Shown piece by piece: positions 35,753 through 64,000 of a stretch of 64,000 nucleotides of DNA; the first letter of the stretch is position 1, and every line of letters begins with the position of its first letter. Below the pieces are notes generated by a model. The model did not search any database. It saw nothing but the letters and a program-made list of their open reading frames with translations, and was not told where the DNA came from. Both the position numbers and the translations under genes were made by a program. This stretch comes from Dimorphilus gyrociliatus (Eukaryota; Animalia; Annelida): positions 1 through 64,000 of the forward strand of contig CAJFCJ010000054.1 of NCBI GenBank assembly GCA_904063045.1, read 5' to 3'.

Positions 35753-38700
35753 CTAGAGGTCTAACGACACCTTTCTTCCACCCTTTCGCTTTTTTTCTAT
35801 AGCAAAATTGATCATTTGTTGTTTGTATTCTTTTGTCAAATCATTATTTGATATATCCACTTTTAGCAAGTTTTGCAGTTGATTTAAAAAGTCTATGAAA
35901 GCTTTTACAATGTTATTGTCAATTGCAATACTTTGAATAAAAATACATTCCAAAATGGGTGCACTGGGAGAGAGACTTTGGAAGAATCTTTGAAGGCATT
36001 CATTACCAATTCTATTGAAACTTATATCAAAGACTTTTAAAGAGAATTGCATAGACAGGAATGTTTGCAGATGTTTGCAAGTGATCTCGTTCAAACTTGC
36101 ATCACTCAACAGAATTTCTGTACAATAGATGAATGTACTGGTTGTATCAGTGAAAAATGATTTCAAATTGTAAGAATTCAAATCCATATATGTAAAATTC
36201 ATCACCATCTCTTTTAGCAATAAATTACTGTTACTTGGAAATTGAAGCAGACTTTTTTCAATTACATTCTTTAAATGACCAAAAACTGTACTGTTATTTT
36301 TGGCTGGACAGAACACTTCACTTGCACAAAGGTTGACTATTGCTAAAACTTTAATATCTTGTTTATGCCTTTTCTGTAAGGCTAAAAAGATTCTTTTGTC
36401 ACCCTTATACTTAATTACTATTTTATTGAATTGGTGTACAGATTTCTTACATAGGTAGAGGAAGAGGCTCATATCACCTGCATTCCGAATGTTTAAAGAT
36501 AAGGTACTTCCCAGAAATTTCCCTTCGGAAAGTGCTTTAAACAATGGCACACCTGATGGATCTAATGATCTGGAGACAAAGAATTTTCTCAGGTAGTAAT
36601 TTTCAATTGCAGGTAATATGAATAATTTATTCCAACCATGAATTAAAGGGAAAATAGCTTGTGGATTATATCTTATAATTCCAGTGGATAAGAGACTGTC
36701 AAGCTTCATTGATGTTAAATTTGTATAGTATTGTACTAGGACATCATTTGTATTGTTGTTGTTATTTTCCCATTGGAAATGACTCCTTTTCTTCTCATTT
36801 AAAATCTTTATAAACTGTTGAATTGCATTTTGTAAGGCAGGATCATGTTGATTATACTTCTCAGATAAAGTTAAAAATACAAGTAAAAAACACAAAGGAT
36901 GAGTGCAAAATTCCTTGAAGCCTTTTAAAGAAGTCATCAACATGGAATAATTGTATTTGATTGCTGAAAATGTATTGCTTCCAGAATAACTACAATAGAT
37001 GTCCTTAAGACTGTTCATATTGTGTTTGGGATTGATACCTTTTATTGTGAATATATAATCTATAGGAATTGATGGTTGCCTTAAATTTCTAATGAAAATC
37101 AACTTTCTAATTTTCCATGCCATCTCTTCTCTAAGAATTCTGCTTAGATTACTATCCGGATAGTTTGAATGTTCTTCATCATCATCAATAAGAATCAACA
37201 ACTTTTTGGGATAATATTCCAAAAGCATATTCAAATTCTCCTTTATCCTATTAATGCCGTTTCTCAAATGTTTATAATTTGAATCAAACAAGCAGTCAAC
37301 TAAGGATATGGGGCTTTTTATCTCACTCAACATTAACCTTAATACCAAAAGATTTTGCAGTTTCTCCTCCTTCGACCATAAATACAGAATTCTATTGAAC
37401 AGTGTTGTTTTGCCAATTTGAGCCGATCCAATAATGAAATTATTCACTGCCGAATTGCTGATGGATTCCAAAAACATAACATCAGCTAAATTGCTGGTTG
37501 TTTTTTGAAAAGGTTTAATTTGCTTCAAAAGTAATGGCATATATAATTGGTTGAAAAATTTGGTGTATTCTGGTTGAGCAACTGTTTTTAGGTCGATATT
37601 GGGTAGAAATTTCACGCCATCTAAATAATTTTTATGACAGTTAGCTGTTAAGTTTACAAAATTCTGCCAAATTCTGGTTAAGCTGGGATTTTGACCATTG
37701 TCATTGTTCAATCTAGCCTTTTTTACTATATTCGACATATTACTTTTTGCTTTGTTAAGCCAAGGAAAGAATTTTGAATGATAGACACTATTTGATGAGA
37801 TAATATCGGTTATCTTCTTTAAAATTAATAATCTGCTTTCCTCATTTATTTCCAATGTTACATTACTCAAATTTCGACATTTGACTAAAAAATTGACGAT
37901 ATTATCTATATCCTCTTTTATAATTGAACCTGACAGGTGAAATACTCTCAATGTCAATGAAGAATTCTTTAAATGTTTAAATATATCTGACAGTAGTCTT
38001 TTCTTGTTCTTGTTCTTGTTCTTGTTCTCCTTCTCCTTCTTCTCTCTCTCCTTTTCCATATCCTCCTTCTCCTCCTTCTCCAATTCCTTCTCTGTGTCCT
38101 CCTTCTCCTTCTCCTTCTTCTCCTTCTCTATCTCCTTTTCCATATCCTCCTTCTCCTCCTTCTCCAATTCCTTCTCTGTGTCCTCCTTCTCCTTCTCCTT
38201 CTTCTCCTTCTCTATCTCCTTTTCCATAAACTCCTTCTCCATCTCCTTCTCTATATCCTCCTCCCCCTTCTCCCTCTCCTTGTCCTTTGTTGTTCTAGCA
38301 GTTGGTCTGCTGTTGTCTTGCCTTTCACCAAAAGTTATATAGATCTCCTCAAGGTAGTGGCAATGATCAAACAATTTGCTCAAGCTATCTAAACAATGTT
38401 TGGTTATTGGACATTTGTTTATATTGAAAACTTTCAAGTTGGAAGATTTTCTTAATGAATCAAATATTTCACCTAAACTGTTAGTAATAGCTGGATTTCC
38501 GCCAATGTCAATTTCACTTAAATTTGGACATACCTTCAGTAGTTCTGCCAACTCTTTGCCATTTTGTTCATTGAAATTGCACAAATTGAATTTTAAAGAT
38601 TGCAGTGTTGGACTTGCTAATTTCAATTTTGATATAATCTGGATGTCATTCTCTTGATCATCATCATTTGAAATTTCCAACAGGTTCTCATTTGAACTCA

Positions 38701-41700
38701 TGTCCAAGTAACGTAAAGATCTGCAATAAATGAGAAGATGGCTCAAATTCTGTCCATGTTCTCTGTACGACAACTTACAGGATCTCAAAATCAAGAAATG
38801 AAGAAAAGGAGCACAAGACTTAATTATTGCAGGTATAATTTCAAGCATAGGAGGTTCATTATTACTCAAATTCAGGTATTTCAATCTTCTGAAAGCCATA
38901 AAGAAATTATGTAAATTTTTCAAAGCCCAATTTCTCAAATCTTGAAAAAGAAGATTTCTAAATTCCCTAACAGCTTCATCCTTAAATAACGACTCATTCA
39001 ATATGCATTTCTTAAAATGAGATAAGTTGTTAAAATCATCAGGCTGTTCACTCTTTATGTCTTTCAAAAGGCTTTCCTTAAGCTTGATGACATCATTACA
39101 CTGGTATTTCCTGGAAACTAAATTCTGTTCCAAAGTTTGTACAGACATTTTCTCAAGGAGAATACTCCTGAAATAGTTTAAATCTTTATTTTGAAACTTT
39201 GTTGAAAAGAGTCCTCCTTCCAAGTGATAAAAATTTGTTGCAGTTAAATCTTGCAATAGATACTCTTTAGTATTTTCATCATCAACAGTATTGAGATCCC
39301 TTATTTTACAACTAGAAATATCCAAGTAGAGTAAGTTACTCTGATTTGATTGTACACTTGAATAGAAAATGTTCAAGTGCTTGCCAATATTTTCATTTCT
39401 ACTCAAATTTATACTTTGAGCATTTGGTAGAGATTTGAAAAGATCCCAAAATGCTTTCAAACTTTTCTGAGAGAGATTACAATTAGAAAAATTCAACTTT
39501 AATATTGTTGACTTGGATGATGACTGTGAAAGAGCTTCAAATATTTCCGCCATTCTCTCTTCTCTAATTTCAACATTATTATGTATCCAGAAAATCTCTA
39601 AGCATTTACATTCAGCCAGGAATTCTTTCAATTTATTACTTTTGCCAATTTTCAGTTTGCAATCGTTAATCTTTAAAATTTTCATAATTTTATTAGTTGA
39701 TAAAGCTGTAAACAAATCAGAGCAAACTTCCTCATTAATTACATTTCCACTTAAATCTAGATTTTCCAATTGGGAGCATTTCTTTAAGAATTTACTGACA
39801 ACTTTTAGACTATTCTCGTTTAATTTGCATCTACTCAAATTGATGCTTTTTAACTTACTCGACGAATTCTCTAAACTCTCAATAACCTCTCGGAACATTC
39901 CGTAAAATTGCGTATTGTGTGAGATATCGATTTGAGATAAATTTTTTAAATTCTTCAGCAAAATGATAAGATTTTCATATTGATAAACACGATTTAAGTT
40001 GCATTTTGACAGATTTACAGATTTCAATTTTTTATTTACCTTTTTGAAAATATGGTTAAATTCAGAATCCAAACAGATAATTTGCGATAAATGCAAATAT
40101 TCCAACTGTTTGAAATTCTTGATTATTTGACTAAGGAGAAAACAACTCTCTTTATCCAAGTAACAATTCTCAACTGAAAATTCTTTTATTCCACTTTTCA
40201 TTGAATTTAGGCCTTGCCAGAAAATTAGCATTGCTTTATCAATAAATTTCACATCCTTTAGTTTAATTGATTGTAAACCTTTTAAAGAGAAAAGGCAACT
40301 TGAAAAGATTGAACTGATTCTGTTATCTATTTCAATATTTTCCAGGTGGAAATATTTCAATTTCTGGAATGATATATTCATAAATTTTTCAAATTCTTCC
40401 AAAAATCCAAAAATGTTGAAATTAGTCATTGAAACTCTCTGAATAGCATTACTTTTCATGACATAGCTCATAAATAGTCTGCAATTATCAACCTTCTCAT
40501 TCTCTTCCTTGTCTTCCTTGTTCAAATTCATTGTTTTTTTCTTTTCATTGCTGAACTGTGAAAAGTTGAGAAAGAATTTCTTCTTCTCTTCAGTAGAAGC
40601 TCCATAAAAGAATGGAATTTCAGCAAACATTATAAAATCACTTCTAATCGCTTCTTCGATGAATTTGTTGTGTTTTTCATCTTTTAACGGAATAATCTGA
40701 AACATTTCATTCTGAACATCGGAGTTGAGGAGAATCCTTGGCGATTCATCCTCAATTACAATAGATATTTCGTTGAGTGCCTTATTATTGGTGTTGGATT
40801 TATTTCTGTTGGAGGGAAGAAGCGATTGATTAGTATTTAAAAATGCTCTATAATTACTAGGGAGATCGTCTTGAATGGAATCATTGCTTTTCTGCTCATG
40901 AAACATTGAGTAGTAATTGCAGAAATGTTTGCTGCATTGCTTAAAAAAATCTTCATCTATCTCATCCAATTGACAATTTATAATAAAAGTATTTTTTAAA
41001 TTTTCTAAACTTTCCAGTTGATGAAAGAATTGTTTACAAAATTCACTTTTTAATATTTTATTATTTAATGTAATTGATTCCAAAGTATGAATATTTGTTA
41101 TCATTTCTACAAATCCTGTTGTTATTTCATCGTTCATTCCAATACTAAAGTACTCTACTCCAACTATTTCGTTTTCTTTGATACTGATGACAAGACCTAA
41201 CCCATATTTTTTGTCAAGATTTGATAGAGTAATTCTTAAAGTAGCCGAATCTTTGTCTTCATAAAATGGGTCACTTGCTGTTGCTTCAATATCATATTCC
41301 CTTGTGTTTATTGGTGTTGTTGTTGACTTGAGAATGAGCTTTTTCAACTTTTTCATGTTCAAAACTGATTTGAGTAATTTATCAAAATTCATTTCCAGAT
41401 CATTTAGCCTGATTTCCTCTTCTTCAAAGATTAAACATTTCAATTTTTTACAATTGCTAATCCTTTCGAAGAAGCAGATTTTATCTGAATCATCTCTAAA
41501 TGTACATTCGCTCAGCTCCAATTCCTCAATTTCCTCTTGAAACCTTTTAAAGATGATTCCTATTGTATACTCGTTTAATGTCTCCTTTTTCACTCTGACT
41601 GTTTGGTGAGAATCATTGCCAATAATTAATTCTTGTAAATCTTTATCTTTCAAAACCTTATCTTTAAAGCAGGGTTCCAGTATCATTTTGTTGTAGGTTT

Positions 41701-43213
41701 TCTCACAGTAGTCTGCAAGAAATGCTATTATATTATAAATCTTTGGATTCTTAGTTCTATTGATGATTTCGTAAATATTTTCCATTTCCATTATATTATC
41801 GCTCTCCTTTGCTTTCTTCATATTTTCAACTTGTGTTTCTAAATGTTTTGCTGCAAAATACTCTTTGAACAAGTTGCAATGAAATTTCAAATTAGGCTCA
41901 GAGTGAGTGTCATCAACTTTTGTAAATAGAACATTTGAATAGCATTTCGCTATTTCCTCTATTTTGTCAAACTCTTGAATTGGGCTACCATCTTCTTGTA
42001 TGATGTTGTTGAAACAAAATTGAAAGAAATTCTTTTGAACATCTTTCTCTTCAAAGTGCTGGCCATATTTGCATATTGGATCCAACATAGAATATGGAGT
42101 CTTCTTGTTAAACAGGTCCTTGTTTTCTAACCAAAGGCTCGAGATTATCATAGCAATCTTTGGAGTTTCACTCAATTGCCTTAATTTCGAGTTGAAGTCC
42201 CATAATTGTTTACTTTGCTGTTTCACCATTTTTGTGTATAATGCTTGAATTTGTTGATCATTAAATTTTAACAGTTGAAATACACCAGCAGCATTTATTC
42301 TTAAATCATTGTTTTGTAAACTTTCCACCCAGATAATCATTCTTATTGGATATTTTTCTTGCAATAAAAGTGTTGATATCCACTGCTTTTTCAAAAAACA
42401 TTCCTTACCTAAATCTATCAAGAGAGTTGTCTTTGAATTATCATCTTTCAACAATGCCTCTACAGTATCTTCTCTGATGTAGTCAAATATTTGGCTGTTG
42501 AAATTTTGCTTTTTCACCACTGCAGATAGACTGTTGGCTTCCTCATCTATTCGACTAACATTTATAGAGAGCAGCAGTTGGTGTTTTAACTGATAAGCTG
42601 CCTCCTTGTTGTTGGACCAGTTGTAGATGATTTGTTGACTTTGAAGAGTCTTACCTGCTCCAGGACATCCCACAAATATCCATTTCTTTTCTTTTATTTT
42701 TTTTTCAAATATTTCTTGAAAAACCTCTTCTTCCTCAAGTTCAACTGTTGTTTCTTCATTTTCAACATTTTCCTTAGTCTGTGACAGTTTTAATGGAACT
42801 CTAAAACTATCTAATTTTTGTCTATTATTTTGTCTCAATGGAAGGATTGGAACATTTGAAAGTTCTTCTTTTCGCCTCATTTTGACAAGTTTTATCAAAT
42901 TTTCCCAAACTTCAACTTTCTTTTCGTCGGTAAAGTTTTGAGCCAACTGTTGTGATTGTTTATTGTCCATTTCACTGAACAGTCCCGTCAGGGAGAATTC
43001 ATTGTTGAAAATATCATTAATAGTTGCATCTATTATTTTTGCTTTGTCATTGCTTTCTTCATAGCTTTGCTTATTGTCTTGACCTTGTTCACAGTTGTAG
43101 ATGCCTTCCTGTACAAGAAAGTCGGTAGCGAAAAAAAAATTGTTTTTATTATCAAGTAATTTTTGCAACTTTGTTTCATGTTTGGTCAATAGTAGTCTTC
43201 TAACAGCATCCAT
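35753..43213 (-). CDS. 2486-aa intronless NLR-like protein: CARD-like - NACHT - LRR (with E/K insert) - second NACHT - LRR
   Basis: Uninterrupted ORF, ACCATGG start; Walker A GCPGAGKT (42648-42670) with FHCNLFKEYFAAKHL winged-helix motif; many LxxLxLSxN/C repeats; second Walker A GSAQIGKT (37402-37428) with LLILIDD; terminal LRRs. Confidence 0.92.
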   Translation of the reverse strand: MDAVRRLLLTKHETKLQKLLDNKNNFFFATDFLVQEGIYNCEQGQDNKQSYEESNDKAKIIDATINDIFNNEFSLTGLFSEMDNKQSQQLAQNFTDEKKVEVWENLIKLVKMRRKEELSNVPILPLRQNNRQKLDSFRVPLKLSQTKENVENEETTVELEEEEVFQEIFEKKIKEKKWIFVGCPGAGKTLQSQQIIYNWSNNKEAAYQLKHQLLLSINVSRIDEEANSLSAVVKKQNFNSQIFDYIREDTVEALLKDDNSKTTLLIDLGKECFLKKQWISTLLLQEKYPIRMIIWVESLQNNDLRINAAGVFQLLKFNDQQIQALYTKMVKQQSKQLWDFNSKLRQLSETPKIAMIISSLWLENKDLFNKKTPYSMLDPICKYGQHFEEKDVQKNFFQFCFNNIIQEDGSPIQEFDKIEEIAKCYSNVLFTKVDDTHSEPNLKFHCNLFKEYFAAKHLETQVENMKKAKESDNIMEMENIYEIINRTKNPKIYNIIAFLADYCEKTYNKMILEPCFKDKVLKDKDLQELIIGNDSHQTVRVKKETLNEYTIGIIFKRFQEEIEELELSECTFRDDSDKICFFERISNCKKLKCLIFEEEEIRLNDLEMNFDKLLKSVLNMKKLKKLILKSTTTPINTREYDIEATASDPFYEDKDSATLRITLSNLDKKYGLGLVISIKENEIVGVEYFSIGMNDEITTGFVEMITNIHTLESITLNNKILKSEFCKQFFHQLESLENLKNTFIINCQLDEIDEDFFKQCSKHFCNYYSMFHEQKSNDSIQDDLPSNYRAFLNTNQSLLPSNRNKSNTNNKALNEISIVIEDESPRILLNSDVQNEMFQIIPLKDEKHNKFIEEAIRSDFIMFAEIPFFYGASTEEKKKFFLNFSQFSNEKKKTMNLNKEDKEENEKVDNCRLFMSYVMKSNAIQRVSMTNFNIFGFLEEFEKFMNISFQKLKYFHLENIEIDNRISSIFSSCLFSLKGLQSIKLKDVKFIDKAMLIFWQGLNSMKSGIKEFSVENCYLDKESCFLLSQIIKNFKQLEYLHLSQIICLDSEFNHIFKKVNKKLKSVNLSKCNLNRVYQYENLIILLKNLKNLSQIDISHNTQFYGMFREVIESLENSSSKLKSINLSRCKLNENSLKVVSKFLKKCSQLENLDLSGNVINEEVCSDLFTALSTNKIMKILKINDCKLKIGKSNKLKEFLAECKCLEIFWIHNNVEIREERMAEIFEALSQSSSKSTILKLNFSNCNLSQKSLKAFWDLFKSLPNAQSINLSRNENIGKHLNIFYSSVQSNQSNLLYLDISSCKIRDLNTVDDENTKEYLLQDLTATNFYHLEGGLFSTKFQNKDLNYFRSILLEKMSVQTLEQNLVSRKYQCNDVIKLKESLLKDIKSEQPDDFNNLSHFKKCILNESLFKDEAVREFRNLLFQDLRNWALKNLHNFFMAFRRLKYLNLSNNEPPMLEIIPAIIKSCAPFLHFLILRSCKLSYREHGQNLSHLLIYCRSLRYLDMSSNENLLEISNDDDQENDIQIISKLKLASPTLQSLKFNLCNFNEQNGKELAELLKVCPNLSEIDIGGNPAITNSLGEIFDSLRKSSNLKVFNINKCPITKHCLDSLSKLFDHCHYLEEIYITFGERQDNSRPTARTTKDKEREKGEEDIEKEMEKEFMEKEIEKEKKEKEKEDTEKELEKEEKEDMEKEIEKEKKEKEKEDTEKELEKEEKEDMEKEREKKEKENKNKNKNKKRLLSDIFKHLKNSSLTLRVFHLSGSIIKEDIDNIVNFLVKCRNLSNVTLEINEESRLLILKKITDIISSNSVYHSKFFPWLNKAKSNMSNIVKKARLNNDNGQNPSLTRIWQNFVNLTANCHKNYLDGVKFLPNIDLKTVAQPEYTKFFNQLYMPLLLKQIKPFQKTTSNLADVMFLESISNSAVNNFIIGSAQIGKTTLFNRILYLWSKEEKLQNLLVLRLMLSEIKSPISLVDCLFDSNYKHLRNGINRIKENLNMLLEYYPKKLLILIDDDEEHSNYPDSNLSRILREEMAWKIRKLIFIRNLRQPSIPIDYIFTIKGINPKHNMNSLKDIYCSYSGSNTFSAIKYNYSMLMTSLKGFKEFCTHPLCFLLVFLTLSEKYNQHDPALQNAIQQFIKILNEKKRSHFQWENNNNNTNDVLVQYYTNLTSMKLDSLLSTGIIRYNPQAIFPLIHGWNKLFILPAIENYYLRKFFVSRSLDPSGVPLFKALSEGKFLGSTLSLNIRNAGDMSLFLYLCKKSVHQFNKIVIKYKGDKRIFLALQKRHKQDIKVLAIVNLCASEVFCPAKNNSTVFGHLKNVIEKSLLQFPSNSNLLLKEMVMNFTYMDLNSYNLKSFFTDTTSTFIYCTEILLSDASLNEITCKHLQTFLSMQFSLKVFDISFNRIGNECLQRFFQSLSPSAPILECIFIQSIAIDNNIVKAFIDFLNQLQNLLKVDISNNDLTKEYKQQMINFAIEKKRKGGRKVSLDL
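38004..38290 (-). repeat. Coding Glu/Lys-rich repeat, 84-bp (28-aa) unit x~2.5, plus (NK)n
   Basis: MEKEIEKEKKEKEKEDTEKELEKEEKED repeated; DNA period 84 bp. Confidence 0.9.
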
Positions 43214-63069: not shown

Positions 63070-64000
63070 GAGAATTCTGTTCAAACAAACCCTTTACAAA
63101 CCCAAGCCCAATCTTAAAAGTAAATATAAGAATGAAAATATAAGTAGGTTTTTTCTAGTTTCGTTCTTCTATTTAATCTAGACAACTTGGATTGAAAAAG
63201 TTACTGTTTACAAAGAAACCATTTACAAACGCAACGTAAGAATGAAAGTATAAGTAGCTATTTTCTAGTTTCGTTTTTCTATTTAATCTAGACAACTTGG
63301 ATAAGACTGAAAGCACATAGGCGCTTCTTTTCACTTAGCAAATAAACACAATTTGTTGTCAATGGTTGGCTTTTTTTATTTAGGCCATTCATAGCTTTTT
63401 CTTTCACATGTTTTCACAGGGAAAAGAGAAAGCAAAAAGCTAGCAGAGAAAAAAAACCATGGATGCTGTTAGAAGACTACTATTGACCAAACATGAAACA
63501 AAGTTGCAAAAATTACTTGATAATAAAAACAATTTTTTTTTCGCTACCGACTTTCTTGTACAGGAAGGCGTCTACAACTGTGAACAAGGTCAAGACAATA
63601 AGCAGAGCTATGAAGAAAGCAATGACAAAGCAAATATAATAGATGCAACTATTAATGATATTTTCAACAATGAATTCTCCCTGACGGGACTGTTCAGTGA
63701 AATGGACAATAAACAATCACAACAGTTGGCTCAAAACTTTACCGACGAAAAGAAAGTTGAAGTTTGGGAAAATTTGATAAAACTTGTCAAAATGAGGCGA
63801 AAAGAAGAACTTTCAAATGTTCCAATCCTTCCATTGAGACAAAATAATAGACAAAAATTAGATAGTTTTAGAGTTCCATTAAAACTGTCACAGACTAAGG
63901 AAAATGTTGAAAATGAAGAAACAACAGTTGAACTTGAGGAAGAAGAGGTTTTTCAAGAAATATTTGAAAAAAAAATAAAAGAAAAGAAATGGATATTTGT
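63070..64000. repeat. Inverted segmental duplication of ~42670-43490 (NLR upstream region and 5' CDS)
   Basis: Near-identical reverse complement; this copy has an extra ~115-bp tandem unit at ~63125-63300. Confidence 0.92.
63459..64000 (+). CDS. Second copy of the NLR gene (5' 180 codons; runs off the window just before Walker A)
   Basis: MDAVRRLLLTKHETKLQ...KEKKWIFV open to the window edge; three substitutions seen by eye versus the 43213 copy. Confidence 0.88.
   Translation, partial: MDAVRRLLLTKHETKLQKLLDNKNNFFFATDFLVQEGVYNCEQGQDNKQSYEESNDKANIIDATINDIFNNEFSLTGLFSEMDNKQSQQLAQNFTDEKKVEVWENLIKLVKMRRKEELSNVPILPLRQNNRQKLDSFRVPLKLSQTKENVENEETTVELEEEEVFQEIFEKKIKEKKWIF

Follow-up and report, generated by a model that had tools for sequence, protein, structure and literature searches.

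Does a single animal gene encode two complete NACHT-leucine-rich repeat (LRR) modules in one polypeptide, or are two separate products seen as one? The question is raised by a locus of the annelid Dimorphilus gyrociliatus, found at positions 35753-43213 on the minus strand of a 64,000-nucleotide stretch of DNA (the window; positions 1 to 64,000 of contig CAJFCJ010000054.1, assembly GCA_904063045.1). A preliminary description, made from the letters alone, had proposed a CARD-like/NACHT/LRR protein fused in one chain to a second NACHT/LRR module; the two NACHT-LRR modules withstood the analysis described here, and the CARD-like N-terminus did not. We consider it quite probable that the gene is functional and belongs to a small family of intronless NLR-type STAND genes, confined to one lineage, whose products carry two complete NOD modules per polypeptide. 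The predicted architecture begins with a helical N-terminus and a first NACHT module (NACHT1), continues with about 1000 amino acids (aa), the last ~700 of them, if not more, being LRRs of the ribonuclease inhibitor (RI) type, and ends with a linker, a second NACHT module (NACHT2) and a short RI-type LRR array.

The locus consists of one uninterrupted, intronless 7.5-kb open reading frame (ORF) of 2486 aa plus stop, which confirms the single frame of the preliminary description; it starts with ATG, and an in-frame stop lies six codons upstream. The G+C content is ~30% across the DNA of the window, and simple arithmetic from this composition predicts that ~8% of random codons would be stops. 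A frame of 2486 open codons under these circumstances is therefore certainly coding, by which a chance ORF is ruled out. A reading of the gene as a pseudogene was also rejected. An exact look-up of the 2486-aa protein in public records returned no match. The parts of the gene are as follows.

35753..43213, minus strand: whole ORF, comprising an N-terminal helical domain, NACHT1, a long LRR region, an E/K-rich spacer, a linker, NACHT2 and a short LRR array
42809..43213, minus strand: N-terminal domain, residues 1-135, predicted to be all-helical and weakly conserved
41534..42706, minus strand: NACHT1 module with NBD-HD1-WHD-HD2, residues 170-560, assigned from Pfam NACHT, the family profile and motifs
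38324..41533, minus strand: post-NACHT1 region, residues 561-1630, with RI-type LRRs at residues 931-1630
38045..38323, minus strand: E/K-rich low-complexity spacer, residues 1631-1723, an in-frame tandem repeat
37469..38044, minus strand: conserved in-frame linker ahead of NACHT2, residues 1724-1915, with residues invariant in all four genes compared
36224..37468, minus strand: NACHT2 module, residues 1916-2330, assigned from Pfam NACHT, profile search, hhalign and motifs
35756..36223, minus strand: C-terminal short RI-type LRR array, residues 2331-2486, matching ribonuclease inhibitor

The two-module layout is found again in a paralogue and in a second genome. The best database match of the protein is DgyrCDS14929, a public model of 1842 aa from D. 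gyrociliatus, which aligns in colinear order with residues 1 to ~1640 at 47% identity, and in which the Pfam NACHT match falls below threshold. The locus from which this model was derived (L001, on CAJFCJ010000103.1 of the same assembly) holds an uninterrupted ORF of 2441 aa (L001:10001-17326) that retains both P-loops; its two halves run colinear with those of the window ORF at 47-48% identity, and the two genes are most likely paralogues. The two-NACHT layout is invisible in the public protein record because the deposited model is cut before P-loop 2. Two further double-NACHT proteins, P0009 (2233 aa) and P0010 (2270 aa), were found by exhaustive profile search, each as a single intronless ORF, in Logan contigs (L002-L005 and L007) of SRR23372216, SRR23372228 and SRR23372229, which represent a second genome. 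Their P-loops lie at residues 175 and 1687 in P0009 and at residues 180 and 1643 in P0010, and at 24-29% identity both proteins can be aligned colinearly with almost all of the window protein. These contigs have a G+C content of 22% and appear genomic, one of them including ~4.9 kb of ORF-poor upstream sequence; no tRNA was detected when they were scanned for tRNAs. The same second genome also carries a single-NACHT relative, P0014.

Comparison of the four genes (the window gene, L001, P0009 and P0010), which come from two genomes and are 24-50% identical, indicates that the order of the two modules is kept in frame, with both modules read in one frame in each. The linker at residues 1724-1915 is stop-free and includes P1817, W1818, W1849 and H1860, which are invariant in all four genes, and it has no methionine conserved across them. 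A word-based search with module 2 alone against 5.8 billion clusters revealed no stand-alone module-2 protein. The E/K-rich spacer that precedes the linker is encoded by an in-frame tandem repeat with an 84-bp unit, 2.6 copies and 96% matches (38025-38240, minus strand), and it is absent from the L001 paralogue, P0009 and P0010; the repeat is young. The 84-bp repeat may also be polymorphic in length.

The preliminary description had noted two P-loops, each followed by a Walker B-like strand of hydrophobic residues and Asp and each with LRRs downstream, and all of these were found. The Walker A motif of NACHT1 is GCPGAGKT (residues 182-189; 42647-42670) and that of NACHT2 is GSAQIGKT (residues 1929-1936; 37406-37429), with the Walker B motifs LLIDLGKE, in the strand TTLLIDLGKE, and LILIDDDEE, in the strand LLILIDDDEE, respectively. 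On the Pfam NACHT family (PF05729), for which the gathering score is 26.7 bits, module 1 of the window protein scores 18.2 bits when the protein is scanned in pieces, below the cut-off, and module 2 scores 27.1 bits. Higher scores were obtained for the relatives: 36.3 bits for NACHT1 of P0010, 43.3 bits for the NACHT of a single-NACHT relative from D. gyrociliatus (the L006 ORF) and 31.6 bits for NACHT2 of P0009; in the L001 paralogue, two stretches, the better of which is at NACHT2, have a combined score of 50.5 bits. Since the scores of the window modules are marginal when taken alone, the modules were compared at the level of the family.

A profile of four NACHT1 sequences matched NLRC4 among the solved structures (8fvu/8fw2; E 7e-7) over ~280 positions, which span the P-loop and HD1 and reach into the WHD motif FxHxxFxEY with its ADP-sensing histidine; the corresponding WHD motif of the window protein, KFHCNLFKEYFAA, retains the histidine. 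Judged by sequence, the protein is a member of the NACHT-LRR (NLR) family, and its nearest solved relative is NLRC4. In NACHT1, the lysine of the P-loop, the first Asp of Walker B and the histidine of the WHD are retained. Its sensor-1 reads WVES in the window protein, with the arginine changed to Glu; Glu occupies this position in both Dimorphilus copies (WVES and WLES), and SR, TR or CR is found elsewhere. The acidic pair of Walker B in NACHT1 reads KE, KE, EK or DK across the double-NACHT genes, and the single-NACHT relative (L006) has the canonical Walker B DGADE. The region downstream of NACHT1 includes RI-type LRRs at residues 931-1630, with a period near 28 aa, which match ribonuclease inhibitor and designed LRR chains of the PDB with E values of 6e-22 to 1e-12. 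Residues ~620-930 showed no match to a recognised family or repeat. The repeats downstream of NACHT2 are fewer, and the last ~110 residues of the protein match ribonuclease inhibitor in the PDB with an E value of 3.6e-13.

The C-terminal half scores as a NACHT in the window protein and in P0009, and a profile search with it returned NACHT proteins. A profile of two NACHT2 NOD sequences, searched against 1.84 billion representative proteins, gave 12 matches, four of which were family members and eight were others. Seven of the eight others were scanned; they were matched at their NACHT domains and scored 45-90 bits on Pfam NACHT, compared to 17-32 bits on NB-ARC. For the window protein as well, Pfam reported NACHT and not NB-ARC, and no TIR or CC family was found in it. 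In the ESM Atlas, the ten best named look-alike clusters of module 2 all represent STAND-type NTPase families, such as nSTAND4, NACHT and NPHP3_N. The motifs G-x-x-Q-I-G-K-T, L-I-D-D-x-E-[E/D], the sensor-1 arginine (IFIRN in the window protein) and C-x-H-P-L in HD1 (FCTHPLCF) are invariant in all four genes, and the WHD histidine is not kept. The NBD of NACHT2 is the most conserved region between the genomes, with 34% identity versus 20-27% in the other conserved regions. Furthermore, hhalign aligned NACHT1 with NACHT2 at 97.6% probability (E 3.3e-12) over 294 columns, bringing into register the strand before the P-loop, Walker A, Walker B, sensor 1 and the C/x-x-P motif of HD1, up to the WHD. 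Both modules are therefore full NOD modules of the NACHT family that are homologous to each other, and the possibility that the region of the second P-loop is not a NACHT was rejected on the basis of the profile matches, the invariant motifs and this alignment.

The origin of the second module was addressed by a maximum-likelihood tree built on the NBD cores. All NACHT2s form one clade with support of 100/99, and the NACHT1s, including the single-NACHT member, form another with support of 94/92; these two clades, together with the single-NACHT protein P0014, are set apart from other NACHTs at 98/96. A topology in which NACHT1 and NACHT2 are held together was not rejected (approximately unbiased, AU, p 0.41). 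Most likely, NACHT2 arose by an ancient duplication inside the family, which predated the divergence of the four genes and was followed by birth-and-death turnover. An invariant Trp is present at an equivalent position upstream of both NBDs. A duplicated N-terminal domain ahead of NACHT2 was looked for with hhalign, which gave a probability of 0.9% and no significant similarity.

The N-terminal domain itself (residues 1-135) is poorly conserved, with M1, F26, L33, W103, L106 and I107 invariant, and is common to the single-NACHT member at L006; it can be regarded as a real domain because it is shared with that member. It had been proposed that the first ~95 aa fit a CARD or death-fold pattern, and this proposal found no support. 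Pfam detected no death-fold family in the N-terminus even at E<=1, a profile of five N-terminal sequences retrieved no death-fold chain and nothing relevant from the PDB, and the hhalign probability was 0.3% for a Death-domain profile derived from two NLRs that the analysis had turned up. A look-up in the protein-language-model atlas was featureless, with a best score of 0.40. The AlphaFold model from five sequences was all-helical and unreliable, with a predicted local distance difference test (pLDDT) value of 46.5, and no conclusion on the fold was drawn from it; Foldseek with this model gave no match below E 0.8. The domain may be a very divergent helical bundle.

Several points weigh against the reading of the gene as a functional two-NOD receptor. 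In the model DgyrCDS14929, a predicted 56-nt GT..AG intron shifts the frame to a stop, so that the ORF is abandoned 6 residues short of P-loop 2, and equivalent GT..AG letters are present in the window at 37392-37447, where splicing may produce a truncated isoform with module 1 only. That the protein is made as one chain, which would be of ~290 kDa, is suggested by the conservation of the frame. The NACHT2 profile matches the solved NLRs weakly (NOD2, 5irm; E 0.1), and AlphaFold of module 2 on a two-sequence alignment reached a pLDDT of 35, the NACHT fold of this module being taken only from sequence profiles; for this model and for that of the N-terminus the alignments were too shallow. The N-terminal effector domain has no recognisable fold in profile and structure searches, and only motifs point to an immune role and to separate tasks of the two NTPase sites. 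These points bear on three other explanations of the locus.

The explanation that survives best is that the two modules are not normally part of one chain, either because a short intron before P-loop 2 leads to a single-NACHT protein or because an internal start leads to module 2 alone. It agrees with the annotation of the paralogue, which uses the 56-nt intron and ends before NACHT2, with the existence of single-NACHT relatives such as the 1623-aa ORF at L006:461-5332, and with a 454-aa ORF of the C-terminal part of module 2 that adjoins the paralogue. However, the four genes hold both modules in a single frame despite identities of only 24-50%, and the linker between them is conserved and stop-free and offers no conserved methionine as a start. 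Module 2 is the best conserved part and is therefore translated, and it was not found as a stand-alone protein in the 5.8 billion clusters. The GT and AG letters at 37392-37447 are accounted for by conserved Val and Asn-Arg codons. Moreover, the annotated model also drops 18 in-frame codons of the paralogue as a 54-nt 'intron', and in this it resembles ab initio guesswork. Separate products are thus improbable, although they keep more credit than the two explanations that follow.

A second explanation would make the second P-loop the remnant of a decayed module, or else a generic P-loop NTPase, attached to an ordinary single-NACHT NLR with a long tail. The Pfam score of module 2, which is barely at the cut-off (27.1 versus 26.7 bits), the weak match to solved NLRs, the loss of the WHD histidine and the lack of a confident three-dimensional model would all be expected from it. 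It is hard to reconcile with a Walker A, a DDxE[E/D] Walker B, a sensor-1 arginine and a C-x-H-P-L motif that are invariant in four of four genes, with an NBD that no other segment of the protein equals in conservation, with the finding that the scanned non-family profile matches are NACHT proteins, and with the alignment to NACHT1 through NBD, HD1 and WHD at 97.6%; we hold it to be very unlikely. The third explanation, that two neighbouring NLR genes were joined by the assembly at the E/K-coding tandem repeat, might draw on the 84-bp repeat at the junction, a type of sequence prone to misjoins, and on the presence in the same window of a second, near-identical gene start in inverted orientation, but it is effectively refuted, since the repeat is missing from L001 and also from P0009 and P0010, for which there are independent assemblies from a different genome, and all three genes are continuous across the same junction, with conserved linker residues on either side, so that the layout is independent of the repeat and an assembly join is excluded.

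With the two-NOD reading preferred, a mechanism may be considered. The protein would act as a nucleotide-controlled switch or an oligomerisation platform in cytosolic surveillance. NACHT2 could be the hydrolysis-competent engine, because its Walker A, acidic Walker B and sensor-1 arginine are all intact and no other region is conserved as well. NACHT1 of the two Dimorphilus copies may instead be a degenerate site that binds nucleotide and hydrolyses it poorly, because the sensor-1 arginine is replaced by Glu and the 'DE' of Walker B by 'KE' and the WHD histidine is kept; its role might lie in regulation, or in sensing through the long LRR. Such asymmetry between sites is known from other tandem ATPases. 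The gene could then be a covalent version of a sensor/helper NLR pair. The preliminary description had suggested either a joined sensor and executor or two NTPase units per chain, and the unequal decay of the catalytic motifs in NACHT1 and NACHT2 is the one new observation with a bearing on these suggestions. In the most specific form of this proposal, which is tentative and for which we see perhaps one chance among several, a degenerate N-terminal NOD with its tail of ~1000 aa, largely LRR, would sense a ligand, and assembly would be driven by a hydrolysis-competent C-terminal NOD under its control in cis. If this were true, each protomer would add an intramolecular NOD heterodimer to the oligomer, a mode of assembly that is not known to have been described for any animal STAND protein.

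The surroundings of the gene and the other family loci provide information on the turnover of the family. One further feature of the window belongs to it.

63191..64000, plus strand: start of an inverted, near-identical gene copy, with its ATG at 63459

This copy lies 20 kb from the first one and continues past the end of the window. Its 542 visible coding bases (the first 180 codons) differ from the first copy at 3 nucleotides, and the shared sequence extends ~270 bp upstream. Either the region was duplicated very recently in inverted orientation, or the duplication stems from the assembly. The single-NACHT member with the family N-terminal domain is an unannotated ORF of 1623 aa at L006:461-5332 on the plus strand of CAJFCJ010000036.1. 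Besides double-NACHT genes, the family therefore includes single-NACHT members and fragments, and one copy is a very recent inverted duplicate. A birth-and-death pattern is typical of immune receptor families, and the turnover seen here fits such a pattern.

Several smaller observations were made at the same loci. Beside the paralogue, an unannotated 454-aa ORF at L001:5755-7119 (minus strand) shares 49% identity with residues 2083-2475 of the window protein; this partial duplicate takes in no more of module 2 than its helical part and LRR. A run of N follows the L001 ORF at L001:17899-21126. Downstream of the single-NACHT member, a frame-broken copy occupies L006:8263-12341 (plus strand); P-loop 2 is among its pieces, and a fragment of it is deposited as the public protein CAD5126254.1 (569 aa). 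D. gyrociliatus also has a conventional NACHT-LRR protein, P0021 (DgyrCDS3195, 1598 aa), as judged by precomputed Pfam domains.

To our knowledge, animal NLRs are understood as one-NOD proteins, and cooperating NLRs such as NAIP and NLRC4 are separate gene products. The window protein resembles NLRC4 and other NLRC-type receptors in the NBD-HD1-WHD order of the NACHT and in the WHD FxHxxFxEY motif, both seen in its NACHT1, and in its RI-type LRRs, and both architectures are those of cytosolic STAND proteins. Unlike NLRC4, which has one NACHT per chain, it has two, its gene is intronless, no CARD or death-fold is detectable, the sequence identity is very low, and NACHT1, the module that is likened to NLRC4, is itself under the Pfam cut-off. 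By analogy with NAIP-NLRC4 and plant paired NLRs, the two different NOD-LRR units might split sensing and execution, and the asymmetric catalytic motifs fit a division of labour of the kind seen in paired NLRs. In contrast to NAIP-NLRC4 pairs, however, the units are covalently joined, and their stoichiometry would be 1:1 in cis.

Tandem NLRs have been described in plants, namely Arabidopsis RPP2A (TNTNL) and the TNLTNL and CNLNL classes of grape and poplar (PMC3782705), and wheat Sr62-NLR/WTN1 has two NB-ARC domains (bioRxiv 10.1101/2024.08.30.610287 and 10.1101/2024.08.30.610185). For Sr62-NLR, unequal roles of the NB-ARC domains were proposed, with NB-ARC2 as the predicted docking site of the sensor kinase (bioRxiv 10.1101/2024.08.30.610287). 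The window protein is like these plant proteins in having two NOD modules per polypeptide, and its N-L-N-L order is shared by some of the plant classes. The plant proteins have NB-ARC modules and TIR or CC heads, whereas the modules of the window protein are NACHT and no TIR or CC family was found in it; in addition, each of its modules is much larger, with ~1000 aa, largely LRR, between the NODs. Since the plant modules are NB-ARC and not NACHT, the likeness is an analogy and not a common descent of the architecture. A full-text literature search found no description of two NACHT domains in one animal protein, which is not proof of novelty, and what it returned on two or tandem NACHT domains dealt only with NACHT-NACHT contacts between chains or with counts per genome.

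Collectively, we can conclude that this is a genuine, conserved gene family of the NLR type with two NACHT domains, the layout of which was found described for plants and not for animals. It would be an animal counterpart of the plant tandem NLRs that evolved independently. A natural fusion of two NACHT-LRR units with unequal motifs would also allow the control of one NOD by another to be tested directly, at fixed stoichiometry, in a single polypeptide. As the paralogue model is cut before P-loop 2, the family illustrates how divergent immune-type receptors escape standard annotation and Pfam thresholds. Annelids besides tubeworms and Capitella have been reported to lack an NLR homologue (PMC8476170); despite this report, both the two-NACHT family and the conventional NACHT-LRR protein DgyrCDS3195 are present in Dimorphilus.

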